Part shown: positions 1 through 27,037 of the stretch, one piece after another
How positions within the stretch are numbered: the stretch's first letter is position 1
Layout: each line of letters starts with the position of its first letter
Assembly (NCBI GenBank): GCA_023334545.1
Contig: JAADVB010000049.1
Location: 28,092 to 92,091 of the forward strand
DNA: 64,000 nt
Direction: 5' to 3'
Origin: Salisapilia sapeloensis CBS 127946
Taxonomy: Eukaryota; Protista; Oomycota
Position numbers and translations under genes: made by a program
Notes under the pieces: generated by a model
Database searches by the model: none
What the model was told of the DNA's origin: nothing
The model's input: only the letters and a program-made list of their open reading frames with translations

Positions 1-266
1 GTCCAGACTCTGATTATTAAAACCAACTACCACGAGATCTTCATATACCAAGATGCTGATGACAGTAGCTCTAGGTAAAAAGGTCTGGAAACTCTTTCGT
101 AAACAACATGAAAGACTCCAAGTAGTCTCTTCACGTCGATGGAGCTTGTTCTTTATCTATAAGAATGAAACTACTACACAAGAGCATGAAATTGAATGAT
201 TTGTTCTTCCGTTTACTTGTACACGCGTACAATATCAATTTCCAGTCTAATCATGTGCCGAAGGAC

Positions 267-1799
267 CTACTCTAACGTCCGTGATTCTGCTTCCGCGGCA
301 AGGGTATCCCACTTCCAGCGGCTCATCAATGTCGTTAACGCACAGAAAGCCGATATGATCGCAGCGCCAATACCAAGCCAAGCACCCTCGACTCCCCATC
401 CCAAGCGGAAGGCAAAGGCGGCGGAGAGTGGCAGACCGATAAAGTAGTACGCGACAAAGTTGACGGTCGCGGCGGCAGTTTGCTCACCAGCACCACGGAA
501 GACACCTTGCGTGACGGTGTTCAGTCCGTCCACGACTTGCAGCGGTGCCCAGATGAGCAAGACTTGGGATGCTAGCTCGATACTATCTGGAGCATTGATG
601 ACAATGCCGGCAATCTCACGGCGGAAGATGCCGAGCAATAGAGACACAATGGCACACATCACAAAGCCTACCCCGATGGAAAGTCTACCAGCAAGCTTAG
701 CGCGCATCGGCCGCTTCGCACCGAGCTGGTTGCCGACACGGACGTTGGCAGCGATGGAAACGCCCATATTGATCATGAAGATGCAGCTAGTACAGTCGAC
801 GACGACAGAGTGAGCACTTAGCGCCAAGACTGCATTTGGGAGCAATCCGACGAGGATGGACAGGATCTCGAAACTCCACCATTCAAGGATGACCATGAGT
901 GCTCCTGGGATACCAAGACGTAGGAAGAGACCGAGGTGTCGCCAAGCATTCTTTAGATCCCACCCATGTCGCCACCATTGCGTCAAGTGCGACGGGTACA
1001 TGTAAAAGTAAGGAATGAGCAAGAGACACATGGCCATGTTGCCCAGGACACGAGAGATCGGTACACCATCAAAGCCGAGAGACGTATGGTAGGTGAGGAG
1101 ATAGCCTCCTACCGTATTGACAATGTTGGACAGCACGATGATGACCACCGGCGGATTGACAATATTTTGTGCTTGGAGGACCCGCCGGAAGATCTCATAG
1201 AGAAACATGAATGGCCATCCGAGGATCGAGATACGAATGTAGCGTTGAGCTAACGCAATGACTTCCGGTTCTTGTCCTAGTGCTACTAAGAGCCCTCCAG
1301 CATTCCAATTAAACAGAAGAAGCGGTGCGACGCAGATGCCAAATGCGAGGATCAAGGCAGTTTGGAAGTAGACACCAATTTGGGCATATCGCTTAGCGCC
1401 GTATGCCTGGGAGCAGAGCGTATCGAGGCCAGTGAAGAGACCAATGATGAGCGAGTAGGCGGTCACATTCATAAACTAGGAGAATGCATGTTAGACTAGT
1501 GACAAGATGGATGGCTGGGACTAGATTGGACACACCGTGACAGAGAGTACAGTGGCATCGACGTAGAGCTGAGTGTTCTCTGTGCCTAAATGTCCAGCTA
1601 GAATACTACACGTAAAGCCTGGTATGAACTCTAGCAGGGACGTTGCGACCACAGGTCCAGCGAGATGAAGTAGCTCTTTGACTTCCAAGGTGACGTCGGC
1701 CGCGTCAAGCGGCGGTTCCTCCAGTGATTTCGTCCGCGAATCGTCGGATGTTTGCACCGGTAGCAAATGCTTGGCCTCTAACTCGGTGCTTTCCACCAT
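267..1799 (-). CDS. MATE-family multidrug/toxin efflux transporter (2 exons, intron 1476-1535)
   Basis: ORFs 1521-1799 and 267-1472 join in frame across a 60-nt GT-AG intron with CTAAC branch (LSVT|FMNVTAYS). Carries MATE motifs GLDTLCSQAYGAK, RLGIPG..LEWWSFE and RVGNQLGA, with many TM segments. Confidence 0.93.
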
Positions 1800-22789: not shown

Positions 22790-23713
22790 CTAAACGGATA
22801 GTATGGAGCTTTAAGGCAAGGCACAAGTAAAGCGAATAGACGAATGAATTGAACGGTAATAGAGAGCAAAGACATCGACACATCTTGTTTCCTATCGACT
22901 TCGTCCTAGTTGATAGCATGACGACAAGCAGCTTGGTGGTAGAAGACATGGTAATATACTTTGTACTTTGGAGTCTAGAGTGGTTCATATCATCCTTCTT
23001 GCGGCAGAAACGTCCGTAGAAGGAAGGTTGAGAAAGATACATGCACATCCTTCCATCCTCTCGATTACATCAGAGTCATACGACGATGGACTAGTCTAGA
23101 CCTAGAGTCATGAGTAGGAAGATGCTGTCGATAGTAGATAGTGACTTCAAGATCTAGTAGAGACTCATGGAAACTCAGGAACGACGGTACGAATGGACGA
23201 ATGGACGTGTCAAGTCATCAAGCTACAACTTGTTACTGTATGCCGATCGTCCCTGTATGTGGATCTGCTTGAGCGCGCAGGTCGTACGATCGCAATGCAC
23301 ATCATACTCCCAGATTAATCACAGCCAGCTTACATGCATGCACATCTCCTTCATCCATCTACATCGCTACCAATGCACATCGATAGGTAGAAACATAGTT
23401 ACTACTGCTCTCTACTGCCATCCTACGACAGTCATGTCGATAGCGCCAGTAGAAATGTTGTATGCAATCCAGCACGACGACGAACGCCTCGCTCATGACG
23501 GTTGGAGATCCTACCGATCCATCCAACAAGCTTCCCAACCGCCTACACCACCTGTTAAACATACAGATCGGACATAAACACTATCCGGCCCTGTCCATTT
23601 CCCACTCCATCCACTCTCTATCAGGTAGCACCAAGAGAAACTGTCATCAAGTACCTACATGAGAATCTCTAGCTAGAAATCCAACAATCAAAATTGTATT
23701 CTTAAGGGCGTAG

Positions 23714-26005
23714 CTACATGCCTCTAGACTTCTGTGAAAGGTACTTCCACCATGCAGTCGGATGCAGACGCGACAGCGTAGTCGTAGCAAGCACAAGACA
23801 AGCCATTGCCAGTACACTCTTATTACTCGCCGTCCGCATCAGTCGAGCGAACGATGCCTTGGATACATTTCTATGAGCAATATACAAGACTAGAAGCACC
23901 ACTCCACTTTCCACCACCAACAAGCGAGCAGAGCGTCGTGTCAGCGTCTCATCTCGCTGCTGTCGCTTCTGCTTCATCACCGCTACCCACGATAGCATAT
24001 CCGAGAAATCCACGACGCCATCTTTATTAAAATCCATCGCATCCAAGTACTCTTTCGCCCGTTCTTCCGTCACGAACGAACCTAAAGAGTTGCGGACAAA
24101 CTGCCGAATGTCTTCCGAAGATAGACGCATGCTACCACTCACATCTATAAGGGTGAACATGAACTTGAGCATATCCAATTCCGATTGCTCCAACAGCTAC
24201 AGATATACTTTAGTCGGCGTTTTAGCTTATATACAAAGTACCTTACCGTCTCTCCTGTCTCCTTCTGCTGGTGCTTTACCCATGCACTAGCAACATCCGA
24301 CAGTACACGTCGTCTAGCATGCGGATGCATCTCATTCGTCGTCTGCCGCATCTCATCCACTACATAAACAATCAGAGCGTGCTCTTTACTATAAAAGACA
24401 TTGCTAGGCGTACTGGATCCTCTTGGCGGTTGAAGATTCGAGAGCTGGTCGCTACCAGAGACGACAGCCACGTTCGTACCACGCGGTTCTTTACTAAACT
24501 CTAGGATCGTATCAAAGATCTTTCTACTAGCAGGTAGAAACGGTAGTTTGGTCATAAACTCTCGCCAGATATCGACGCCACGACCTTCCGGAAAGATTAA
24601 TGCTGGTGGTGGATGGTCCACTGCACTGACTTCCTTCAATTCCCAACGACACTCGTCGTTATTTAGATGCAAGTACGCAGCCTAACGACGTGCTAAATAC
24701 AATGAAAAGTCATCTATCAAAAGGATCGCTTACCTTATTTCCGTGACGATCGCAATAGTTTGGACTGGAGAAGACTGTGAGTAAAGGAGGCATCGTCGTG
24801 GACGATCGACGATCCATCGCTTCCCACTTGCTTCCATGGAAATGGATCTTATACCCATGCTCCTCGAACTCGTGCGCTCGGACCATTGCTACAAGCTCAT
24901 TCTTCTCCAGAAACTGGAAGAGTGCTGCAGCGTTAAAACTATAGGAGCACCCGCGAACCTATCAAGACGATCAGCATATCGTCACAAGCTACTCAAGATT
25001 TCATCATACCGCATTTGTCTCCCATTGTGGCTCTCCATTCGTATCTACACAAATCCATGTCGATCTTAATACCGAAAGACAAGCTAAGCTACTAGGAATA
25101 TGTTTAAATGTACCTTGGACGTTCGGATCAGACCATACTAAGTCACATAAGAGTCCGGAATGCGGGATTTCTCGAAATCGATCTAGATTCTGAACGTCTT
25201 GTAGCGTCTTGAGATCTGGAGAGATACCTCCATGCACGCAGAAGAGCATCCCTTCGTACGTACGCGTTAATGCTGCAATCGGCATCGCTCGAAAGCACGA
25301 GATAAAGTGATAGTACACTGCAATCCCGTATTTGGCTCGACCTATTAGCCATTAGCTATCTCTTTATGCTGTGATTACAAGGCAAAGAGCAGTACATTCT
25401 CCTCGGAAGCCGTAGAAGCTAGAGATAGCTTCACATTCATGATTCCCACGCAAGAGAAATACGTTGAAGGGGTACTAGCATCAGATATGGTAAGACACTT
25501 CAAGATAGCGAGTACTCAAGTCTCATACACGCAGCTTTAAGAGCAGTAGATACAGCATAACTTCGCATGAGAAAGCTCCACGGTCTGTATAATACTCCAT
25601 TTAATAGACATGTATACTAGTCGTGCTATATCCAAACGTACCGATGTAATCGCCCAAGAAGAGTAGCTTGACACGGCCATCTAGACGCTCTCGATGAGCT
25701 ACAAGCAAGCATCGCTAACGCTCCTAGACCATACCTGCAATTCGATCCAAGCCGATACTATCGATCCGCGCGATAAGATCGTAGAACTGACCGTGGAAAT
25801 CCCCAAAGATGTAGGTTGAAGTGCCATCCACGTGCACTACATTCGGTTCGTCCGACAGCACGTCTTTCGCAGCATGAATGAGAGCAACTACATCTCCTAC
25901 ATCCAGGAGCTCCTGATCTTCCAACCGACTCTGTGTAGCTGCCACCGAAAGCCCCACACCAGACGACCGGCGGCGATGGCGTAGCTGCTTGTCTTCCTTG
26001 TCCAT
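23714..26005 (-). CDS. PPP phosphatase, calcineurin A (PP2B)-like, fused to a C-terminal EF-hand pair and hydrophobic tail; ~9-10 exons
   Basis: Hand-spliced motifs in order: GDFHGQ, LFLGDYI|[45 protein letters not shown]|AAYL, KLPF; then ..ETGET|[22 protein letters not shown] and [12 protein letters not shown]. 5' end uncertain. Confidence 0.8.
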
Positions 26006-26261
26006 CTTTCCTTGTCTACGAAAGAAAGAGCATTGTATCTCTTTTCTTTCGTACTCTTCCTCTGAGTCTGATAAATATTATTCTGATTCTACCCGAGCAA
26101 GATGCTCCATGCCTCTCGGCTGTCTACTATAGTAGCACTGCTAGATGGGTATATGGAGATCAACTAAAAGTATTGCCTATGGGATGAGTGGAGGGGGGTT
26201 ATGGAAGATGAAGAGGAAGTAGTACAGCATACATTCGATATATTGAGCAAAGACACACGAG

Positions 26262-27037
26262 CTACTCGTCGGATCCAAAGTCAGCGTTCAAAATGTCGTC
26301 CAGTAGATCGCTTTTCCCGTCAATATCATCCAAGTTGTCATCAGGAAATGGTACAATTTCATCTTCATCGGAATCAGATGCGTTTTTGCTCGTAAATGTT
26401 GGCAACGGTGCGTCTTCATCCCATGGCAAGACGTCGTCTTCCGAGTCCAAACCATCGACAATGCTATCGGTCACTTGCTCCAGGATCGATGGTACCTCTT
26501 CATCTGGCACCACCGGATCTTCCGAAGGGATACCTCCAGCAGCATACTCGACCTCCTATTCCATGCTTATTAGCACATAACTTTTAGTTGCAATCAAAAA
26601 TAAGCATACTTCGTCCTCGGATGGTCGTGTCGAGCTAATCTTTTCACTTGACTTTGTAGATAATCGAGCTTGCTTTCTCTTCTTATGAGACTTGACAACG
26701 TCTTTCGGTGTCGCTGCAACATCTTTCGCAGGAGTGTCATTTCGATCCTGGTTCGAGATATCTCCAAGTGCACGTCTGCTACGTATACTACTTTAGTACC
26801 CAGACTATTCTTCATTATGCAAAGAGCGTACCTCTTCTTGGACTTTGGTGTCTTGGCCTCATTCAGTGGCACTTCCACCAGCTTGTTGCACGTCGAAGAA
26901 CGTTTTTGTGGCGCTAGATACAGCTTTAAGAACATGCACACCCAAGAACATATTCGTAGGATATCATAGTTACTCTGAGACTTGTTGCTACGCGCTGGTG
27001 TCGGCGTATTCTCCTTACTTGCCGCCAACGAGCTCAT
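26262..27037 (-). CDS. 202-aa APC/C substrate, securin-like candidate (4 exons; introns 26914-26973, 26779-26831, 26556-26609)
   Basis: Three 53-60 nt GT-AG introns splice to one 609-nt frame: SKENTP (KEN box), RRALGDISN (D-box), TPQK/TPAK CDK sites, EEVEYAAG, acidic C-terminal half. The coding model is well supported; the securin identity is inference. Confidence 0.65.

Follow-up and report, generated by a model that had tools for sequence, protein, structure and literature searches.

A calcineurin-like phosphatase with a calmodulin-like EF-hand pair in its own chain in Salisapilia sapeloensis and other oomycetes

The textbook example of a phosphatase activated by calcium and calmodulin is calcineurin, whose two-subunit design with its dependence on calmodulin is generally taken to apply to all eukaryotes. 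A gene in the oomycete Salisapilia sapeloensis CBS 127946 raises the question of whether the same kind of enzyme can carry its calcium sensor in its own chain. The gene lies on the minus strand of a 64,000-nucleotide (nt) stretch of contig JAADVB010000049.1 (positions 28,092 to 92,091; hereafter the window). A sequence-only reading of this stretch had taken the product for a self-contained, possibly membrane-tethered calcineurin, in which a catalytic domain of the PP2B (calcineurin) type was fused to an EF-hand lobe like that of calcineurin B (CnB). Both the gene and the fusion that it encodes proved to be real, and the gene is expressed. The protein departs from canonical calcineurin A in three ways: it has no recognizable calmodulin-binding segment, it carries a calmodulin-like EF-hand pair in cis after a retained autoinhibitory-like segment, and it ends in a candidate hydrophobic hairpin. 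The mechanism, we infer, is most likely a calcium-dependent relief of autoinhibition in cis at a membrane.

The gene was initially modeled from a three-frame translation of the minus strand between positions 23400 and 26400, with open segments joined at GT..AG sites. The resulting model of nine exons and 616 amino acids (aa) was dropped when transcript contigs revealed one further intron. In the corrected model, the coding region runs from 26005 to 23714 and consists of 10 exons separated by nine GT..AG introns (about nine had been read from the sequence), encoding 598 aa. The public runs X1, X3 and X4 each yielded one contig of 1832–1866 nt that spanned all ten exons with no mismatches and ended at 23652–23684 on one side and 26010–26012 on the other. 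The eight junctions predicted from the open frame, with introns of 50–69 nt, matched the contig junctions exactly, and the contigs added the ninth intron (24360–24413). That these runs are RNA is a guess, as their label (“RNA?”) shows; the contigs nonetheless come from spliced RNA, because DNA cannot precisely lack nine GT..AG introns. The gene and transcript features are as follows (UTR, untranslated region):

23714..26005, minus strand: whole coding region, exons 26005-25735, 25680-25642, 25584-25529, 25474-25396, 25341-25114, 25044-25010, 24958-24734, 24681-24414, 24359-24247 and 24196-23714 (stop included)
23652..26012, minus strand: longest spliced contig (1866 nt), with at least 7 nt of 5' UTR and at least 62 nt of 3' UTR
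24360..24413, minus strand: intron of 54 nt, phase 1 (splits a codon); joint 24359/24414 present in all four runs (X1, X3, X4 and a fourth, X5)
24197..24246, minus strand: last intron, 50 nt, phase 0, connecting the phosphatase and autoinhibitory part to the EF-hand/hydrophobic exon; junction present in X1, X3 and X4

The joint 24196/24247, which attaches the EF-hand exon, was found in all three contigs, and the equivalent joint was found in run X5 from a related organism. Reading on into an unspliced 24197–24246 intron would meet a stop after 32 codons. Removal of the 24360–24413 intron deletes 18 aa of linker, and its retention would add 18 aa in frame; since its length is a multiple of three, it was invisible to a reading of open reading frames (ORFs) alone. 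A gene-model artefact and a separate EF-hand transcript were both ruled out by the single spliced contigs from three runs, together with the same joint in the related organism, and the fusion across the last intron thus stands as it had been proposed. Run X5 (2025, metagenome-like) contains short spliced contigs of a close relative that cover window positions 23754–25989, are ≈95% identical and have the same exon junctions; the fused gene is therefore expressed in another species or strain as well. The relative has a 6-nt insertion after position 23806. Only ≈260 nt separate the start codon at 26005 from the stop of the upstream neighbor (an ORF ending at 26265). The contigs begin 5–7 nt before the ATG, which points either to a very short 5' UTR and promoter or to contigs truncated at their 5' ends.

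On this one mRNA, the encoded elements follow in the order of catalytic core, LPF helix, short disordered linker, NEMHP segment with a Trp-containing helix, EF-hand pair, and two hydrophobic segments. Every motif string quoted from the sequence-only reading is present in the 598-aa protein, including LPF and both EF loops. The protein features are as follows (PPP, the phosphatase family to which calcineurin A, PP1, PP2A, PP5 and PPEF belong):

24610..25873, minus strand: PPP catalytic core (aa 45–335, interrupted by introns), its set of metal and phosphate motifs complete
24490..24579, minus strand: post-core helix region with LPF motif (aa 346–375; LPF at 357), candidate counterpart of the calcineurin B-binding helix
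24277..24351, minus strand: autoinhibitory-like segment (aa 404–428; NEMHP core at aa 409–413, then a helix ending in a family-invariant Trp), from motif comparison and superposition of ortholog models
23963..24190, minus strand: single EF-hand pair (aa 441–516), calmodulin-lobe-like; Pfam EF-hand_7 at 40.4 bits, best PDB matches calmodulin
24110..24145, minus strand: EF loop 1 (aa 456–467), non-canonical, with Met at position 6 and Asp at position 12
23999..24034, minus strand: EF loop 2 (aa 493–504), canonical at positions 1, 3, 5, 6 and 9, with Asp at position 12
23873..23932, minus strand: first hydrophobic segment (aa 527–546), Kyte-Doolittle 2.18 over 17 residues
23765..23821, minus strand: second hydrophobic segment (aa 564–582), Kyte-Doolittle 1.75; a short basic loop lies between the two segments

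An exhaustive search with the last exon returned generic EF-hand proteins and a small set with 40–47% identity over one stretch. Two of this set were full-length, P0005 (610 aa) and P0016 (622 aa), and have the EF pair at 453–562 behind a Metallophos domain. A word-index search with P0005 uncovered a family with members in Plasmopara, many Phytophthora species, Peronospora, Pythium, Lagenidium, Nothophytophthora, Globisporangium, Aphanomyces, Saprolegnia, Achlya and Thraustotheca. Full-length orthologs with both Metallophos and EF-hand_7 occur in at least 10 oomycete genera, annotated as “hypothetical” or “serine/threonine-protein phosphatase 2B catalytic subunit”. In Phytophthora infestans the family is represented by XP_002908546 / D0MUI2, and the 649-aa form is encoded by several 2-kb Logan contigs. 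The window's own protein was absent from the protein collection searched; its core is ≈60% identical to that of Pythium oligandrum, and in the tree it groups with Pythium and Lagenidium on a long branch. The single-chain layout is conserved across oomycetes and is not unique to the source genome. The family alignment has five conserved blocks: the core; W..F...LP(F/Y).P.S..FF; R(R)..(S/T).E.HP.A.......W; the EF pair; and the two hydrophobic segments. Two public gene models look mis-predicted: in P0176 (Pythium oligandrum, 580 aa) the LPF-helix block is missing altogether, and the N-terminus of P0005 (Plasmopara) is aberrant.

The catalytic core carries the motifs GDFHG, GDYIDRG, GNHE, HGG, VRGCS, RAHE and SSPNY at residues 68, 100, 132, 185, 237, 263 and 300, respectively, and Pfam called Metallophos on exon 5. 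A PDB sequence search with the first 400 residues of an ortholog scored calcineurin A at 225–232 bits, PP1 at 175 and PP2A at 171, with PP5 falling below the 60 PDB matches listed. A hidden Markov model (HMM) of the family gave per-domain scores of 300–325 bits for canonical calcineurin A and 190–240 bits for PP1/PP2A. PP1/PP2A matches at 320–336 bits also appeared in the homolog list; they were dismissed, as their per-domain scores were just 190–240 bits and the high totals arose because of tandem-duplicated gene models. (P0187–P0192 and P0186 are tandem-duplicated or construct sequences.) Foldseek and VIA-align both ranked calcineurin A, the group of human PPP3CA (1AUI) and fungal Cna1, first (Z of 45–46.5, 39–44% identity), above PP5 (34–36%) and PP1/PP2A. 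The core contains FLGDY(I/V)DRG and LLRGNHEC, like calcineurin, PP1 and PP2A. PPEF and PP5 have FNGDFVDRG instead.

Two trees were built, one quick and one careful. All calcineurin-like sequences formed one clade against PP1/PP2A with support of 100/100, in a tree that does not contain PP5, PPEF, PP7, PP4 or PP6. The oomycete family was monophyletic (100/98); neither tree fixed how canonical calcineurin A, the oomycete groups and the other stramenopile groups branch from one another. The protein belongs to the calcineurin A group in a broad sense, set apart from PP1/PP2A in a tree without PPEF, PP7 and PP5, and the PP2B assignment of the sequence-only reading is upheld to that extent. From the ESM Atlas, feature-based and shape-based searches contributed nothing beyond generic phosphatase clusters. 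Clusters combining Metallophos and EF-hands were also seen there from Haptophyta, Chlorophyta and Apicomplexa, and a further one is labelled Nucleocytoviricota (1092 aa).

Directly after the core, canonical calcineurin A has the sequence SLPFVGEK, which corresponds to TLPFLPAS..FF in the family, LPFLPxDFY in a second oomycete group (see below) and CPYMPTSF..F in the wider clade. The helices of this region were modeled in the orthologs with a predicted local distance difference test (pLDDT) score of 84–92. The sequence-only reading had likened this helix to the one by which calcineurin A binds CnB, and the likeness holds for the LPF motif itself. When the family segment was compared with 15 canonical calcineurins by hmmsearch, however, the alignment ended at the HP before the LPF helix; because it did not extend over the helix, the similarity is limited to the short LPF/CPYMP motif. 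The modeled helix also departs from the crystal orientation, the root-mean-square deviation (rmsd) rising from ≈2 to 4–5 Å once the helix is included. The helix position equivalent to Trp352 of human calcineurin A is not conserved, as read from the alignment.

No calmodulin-binding segment was found between the LPF helix and the autoinhibitory segment of the window protein. The intervening linker (aa 376–403) has 28 acidic, Pro- and Gly-rich residues and was disordered in both ortholog models (pLDDT <50). After it comes an NE..P motif, TTNEMHPHA in the window and (T/S)(S/N)E(M/K)HPxA(I/L) in the family. The corresponding forms are Y..A...D.INE(M/V)HP(D/E) in the wide clade and F..AK..D..NE(R/K)(R/M)P near the C-termini of canonical calcineurins, the last of which is the calcineurin autoinhibitory domain. 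INE(M/V)HP was found in ten non-oomycete proteins of the wide clade (P0193, P0195, P0196, P0198, P0201, P0202, P0203, P0207, P0213 and P0258), and not in P0197, P0204 or the second oomycete group (P0221, P0265). With an HMM of the wide-clade motif, the canonical autoinhibitory domain was the best local match in at least 17 of 42 canonical calcineurins. The helix that follows NEMHP is basic and amphipathic and contains the invariant Trp. Basic amphipathic helices with a Trp are typical of calmodulin targets. In most orthologs, an RRxS/T-type site stands just before E-x-H-P (RRRxT/S-S-E); the window has MRQTTNE, without the RR pair.

AlphaFold models were made of two orthologs, from P. infestans (pLDDT 82, predicted template modeling score 0.75) and Aphanomyces cochlioides (pLDDT 87, 0.80), with input alignments in which canonical sequences had been cut before their autoinhibitory domains. 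In both models, the segment equivalent to NEMHP superposes on the autoinhibitory helix of 1AUI, 4OR9, 4ORA, 4ORB and 4IL1. The Aphanomyces model aligned with 1aui_A over 326 residues with an rmsd of 2.0 (model 5..432, chain 36..486), compared to 307–309 residues for core-only entries. Chains with substrate peptides reach the same segment, namely the PP5-Cdc37 structure 5hpe with both models and the PP1 chimeras 6zeh, 6zei and 6zeg with the P. infestans model. An autoinhibitory segment is thus predicted to be present, placed by the models in the active-site cleft. The sequence-only reading had recognized neither a calmodulin-binding nor an autoinhibitory segment: the first absence was confirmed, and the second was not, given the motif and the two models.

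Some alignment rows run from the core into the helices of the EF pair, at the position of the B-binding helix or of the αJ helix of PP5: 2p6b_A (model 4..510), 1m63_A (model 5..527) and PP5 rows ending at 486–503. Such ranges report first and last residues only, and as a hint they suggest that the EF pair may pack near the base of the LPF helix.

The last exon found its best PDB matches in calmodulin lobes (E ≈ 2.5e-8), and the EF-hand_7 score of the pair lies above the Pfam cut-off of 30 bits. A profile of 29 EF pairs was scored along 4il1_A, a calmodulin-CnB-CnA fusion chain (CnA, calcineurin A), and gave 40.0 bits for the calmodulin N-lobe and 29.0 for its C-lobe, versus 14.3 and 13.6 for the N- and C-lobes of CnB. 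In place of the four EF-hands in two lobes and the CnB-type sequence that mark a calcineurin B, just one pair is present here. By these sequence scores, the EF pair is calmodulin-like and not calcineurin B-like, and the identification of the lobe as CnB-like in the sequence-only reading does not survive the comparison. In EF loop 1, position 12 varies by lineage, with Asp in the window, Lys in Phytophthora and Glu in Saprolegniales, and position 6 is not Gly. In EF loop 2, Asp at positions 1 and 12 is invariant among the 29 aligned sequences (D53, D64), and Gly at position 6 is nearly so (G58).

The EF pair is followed by the two hydrophobic stretches and the stop codon, as had been read from the sequence, and hydropathy analysis found both segments in all 19 family sequences, 7–26 residues apart and with Kyte-Doolittle values of 0.7–2.2 over 17 residues (mostly 1.3–2.2). 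Their sequence diverges across the family and their position holds. The two segments are a candidate membrane hairpin.

The closest relatives outside the family are proteins of 740–1056 aa from Chrysoparadoxa and, for the most part, from metagenomes, together with the second oomycete group (914–973 aa). In 10 further relatives, some of which begin with a RING, Pfam placed a single EF pair at the very C-terminal end. Proteins of this kind (P0196 and P0198 of Chrysoparadoxa australica; metagenomic P0193, P0197, P0202, P0204 and P0213) and P0221 and P0265 of the second oomycete group share with the family the calcineurin-like core, the CPYMP/LPF motif and a homologous C-terminal EF pair. Unlike the family, they are 740–1056 aa long, often start with a RING, have a linker of ≈200–300 aa and end right after the EF pair, without the hydrophobic hairpin or the invariant-Trp helix. 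The EF pairs of the wide clade align with that of the window, so that the joining of one such pair to a calcineurin-like core must be old, at any rate among stramenopiles. The two-segment tail was seen in the oomycete family only, and by sequence comparison the tail and the invariant-Trp helix appear as additions of that family.

The second oomycete calcineurin-like group (P0221, P0265, P0212, P0210 and P0246) is very divergent, with a branch length of ≈1.0 and sizes of 600–970 aa. Its members have a long N-terminal extension, the LPFLPxDFY motif and no hydrophobic tail; a weak C-terminal EF pair was confirmed with Pfam in P0210, P0221 and P0265. Several stramenopile relatives (P0193, P0196, P0197 and others) combine an N-terminal RING with the calcineurin-like core and the C-terminal EF pair, so that a domain of the E3-ligase type and a calcium-sensing phosphatase would share one chain. 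No description of this combination was found in the literature searched.

How might such a chain be controlled? On balance, we slightly favor a phosphatase of calcineurin lineage and PP2B type with the calcium sensor in its own chain, autoinhibited in cis, relieved by calcium and tethered to a membrane. In the resting state, the autoinhibitory-like segment would sit in the active-site cleft, as it does in autoinhibited calcineurin. The canonical calmodulin-binding segment would have been lost and its role taken over by the cis EF pair. Calcium, bound mainly at EF loop 2, would cause the EF pair to clamp a nearby helix, either that of the Trp or that of the LPF motif, and draw the inhibitory segment out of the cleft, and the hydrophobic hairpin would tether the enzyme to a membrane with its catalytic domain in the cytosol. 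This logic would be that of the calcium-dependent protein kinases (CDPKs) of plants and alveolates, applied to a phosphatase: a catalytic domain, an autoinhibitory segment and calmodulin-like EF-hands in one chain. The CDPKs differ in being kinases, in having four EF-hands rather than two, and in having no sequence relationship to the present family outside the EF-hands. A broader proposal, which we consider tentative and somewhat doubtful, is that stramenopiles have a third way of coupling calcium to calcineurin, in which the calmodulin-binding segment is replaced by a calmodulin-like cis EF pair directly behind the autoinhibitory domain that was kept, and that the oomycete form is bound to a membrane and needs neither calmodulin nor calcineurin B, making it a “CDPK of phosphatases”. 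If so, the enzyme would probably not be inhibited by FK506 or cyclosporin.

Several observations weigh against the proposed relief of autoinhibition in cis. The homology of the autoinhibitory motif is statistically weak, with a best score of 8.1 bits, where shuffled sequences reached at most 6.3 and had their 99th percentile at 1.3. A profile built from oomycetes only found no canonical autoinhibitory domains, because its RRR run dominates; only the wider-clade profile bridges both. The segment has a pLDDT of just 58–80, and AlphaFold, having been trained on 1AUI, may put a helix there by habit. Loop 1 of the EF pair is degenerate, and position 12 of loop 2 is occupied by Asp in place of Glu, a substitution that lowers calcium affinity or selectivity. 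Membrane insertion is not certain, because charged residues occur within the first hydrophobic segment (Arg-Asp in Peronosporales, Glu in the window) and a basic loop follows it. Finally, the calcineurin affiliation was read from a tree that set the family against PP1/PP2A.

These observations leave room for other accounts. The fully self-contained enzyme of the sequence-only reading, in which the EF pair is half a calcineurin B docked on the LPF helix, with no separate B subunit or calmodulin, would explain why the LPF helix was kept and modeled with good pLDDT in the monomers, and the 2p6b_A, 1m63_A and PP5 rows suggest that the EF pair lies near its base. We nevertheless think it rather unlikely. 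The EF pair scores about three times higher on calmodulin lobes than on CnB lobes, one pair cannot cover the full B-binding helix as the four EF-hands of CnB do, and the equivalent of Trp352 is not conserved by our alignment reading; the alignment rows, which give end residues only, show no docking. A hybrid enzyme is also conceivable, in which the LPF helix binds a separate calcineurin B, the Trp helix perhaps binds free calmodulin, and the cis EF pair serves as an extra or local calcium input or in membrane targeting. Such an arrangement would fit the preserved calcineurin order of core, LPF helix and autoinhibitory segment, as well as the basic, amphipathic character of the helix after NEMHP with its invariant Trp. 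The profile alignment stops short of the LPF helix and the modeled orientation is off that of the crystal, however, and the literature searched gave nothing on a canonical calcineurin B in oomycetes (no sequence search for a B subunit was made), and to us the hybrid seems improbable, if worth keeping in mind.

It is quite unlikely, in our view, that the EF pair is structural or magnesium-bound and the enzyme not regulated by calcium at all, with control exerted by phosphorylation at the basic site overlapping the inhibitory segment or by membrane location alone. The degenerate EF loop 1, with its Lys at position 12 in Phytophthora, the Asp that loop 2 invariably has at position 12 and the RRxS/T-type site of most orthologs all speak for it. 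However, in 29 sequences from distantly related stramenopiles EF loop 2 has kept every other liganding position as well as Gly at position 6, which argues for selection on ion binding, and the kinase site is not universal, as the MRQTTNE of the window demonstrates. Least of all do we expect a PPEF/RdgC-type phosphatase (PP7 class) rather than a calcineurin relative. Such phosphatases do share the overall architecture of a PPP domain followed by EF-hands in one chain, and with it the idea of direct calcium control, and metazoan “phosphatase with EF-hands” clusters were among the language-model neighbors (scores of 0.91–0.93). PPEF, however, has an N-terminal IQ motif and inserts in the catalytic domain, and lacks the LPF and autoinhibitory elements of calcineurin. 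No IQ motif is present in aa 1–44 of the window protein; these residues align with the N-terminal helices of the orthologs, which in the models lie inside the span aligned to calcineurin A (from residue ≈3–5). The catalytic domain is nearest to calcineurin A by sequence and by identity in structural alignments, exceeding PP5, the calcineurin-specific LPF and autoinhibitory motifs are kept, and the FLGDY(I/V)DRG and LLRGNHEC motifs are present. By our reading, PPEF is a different PPP subfamily, and the resemblance to it is most likely convergent.

The architecture was described in none of the full-text literature searched, and the supplements of PMC5322657 held no match. The protein is apparently a variant of calcineurin that is undescribed in that literature; since the sequences themselves had already been deposited with generic names, what the finding offers is an interpretation and not new sequence. 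RNA-seq of P. infestans revealed nine “calcineurin” genes with stage-specific expression (PMC5322657), and a CBL-like protein has been mentioned (PMC3019232).

Calcium signaling matters for spore development in P. infestans. If the proposed relief of autoinhibition by a cis EF pair is true, these organisms would have solved again in cis, for a phosphatase, the regulatory problem that CDPKs solved for kinases, and the family would provide a natural system for asking how an EF pair displaces an autoinhibitory domain. As a lineage-specific and structurally distinct calcineurin, it would also be a reasonable target for functional studies in plant and animal pathogens.

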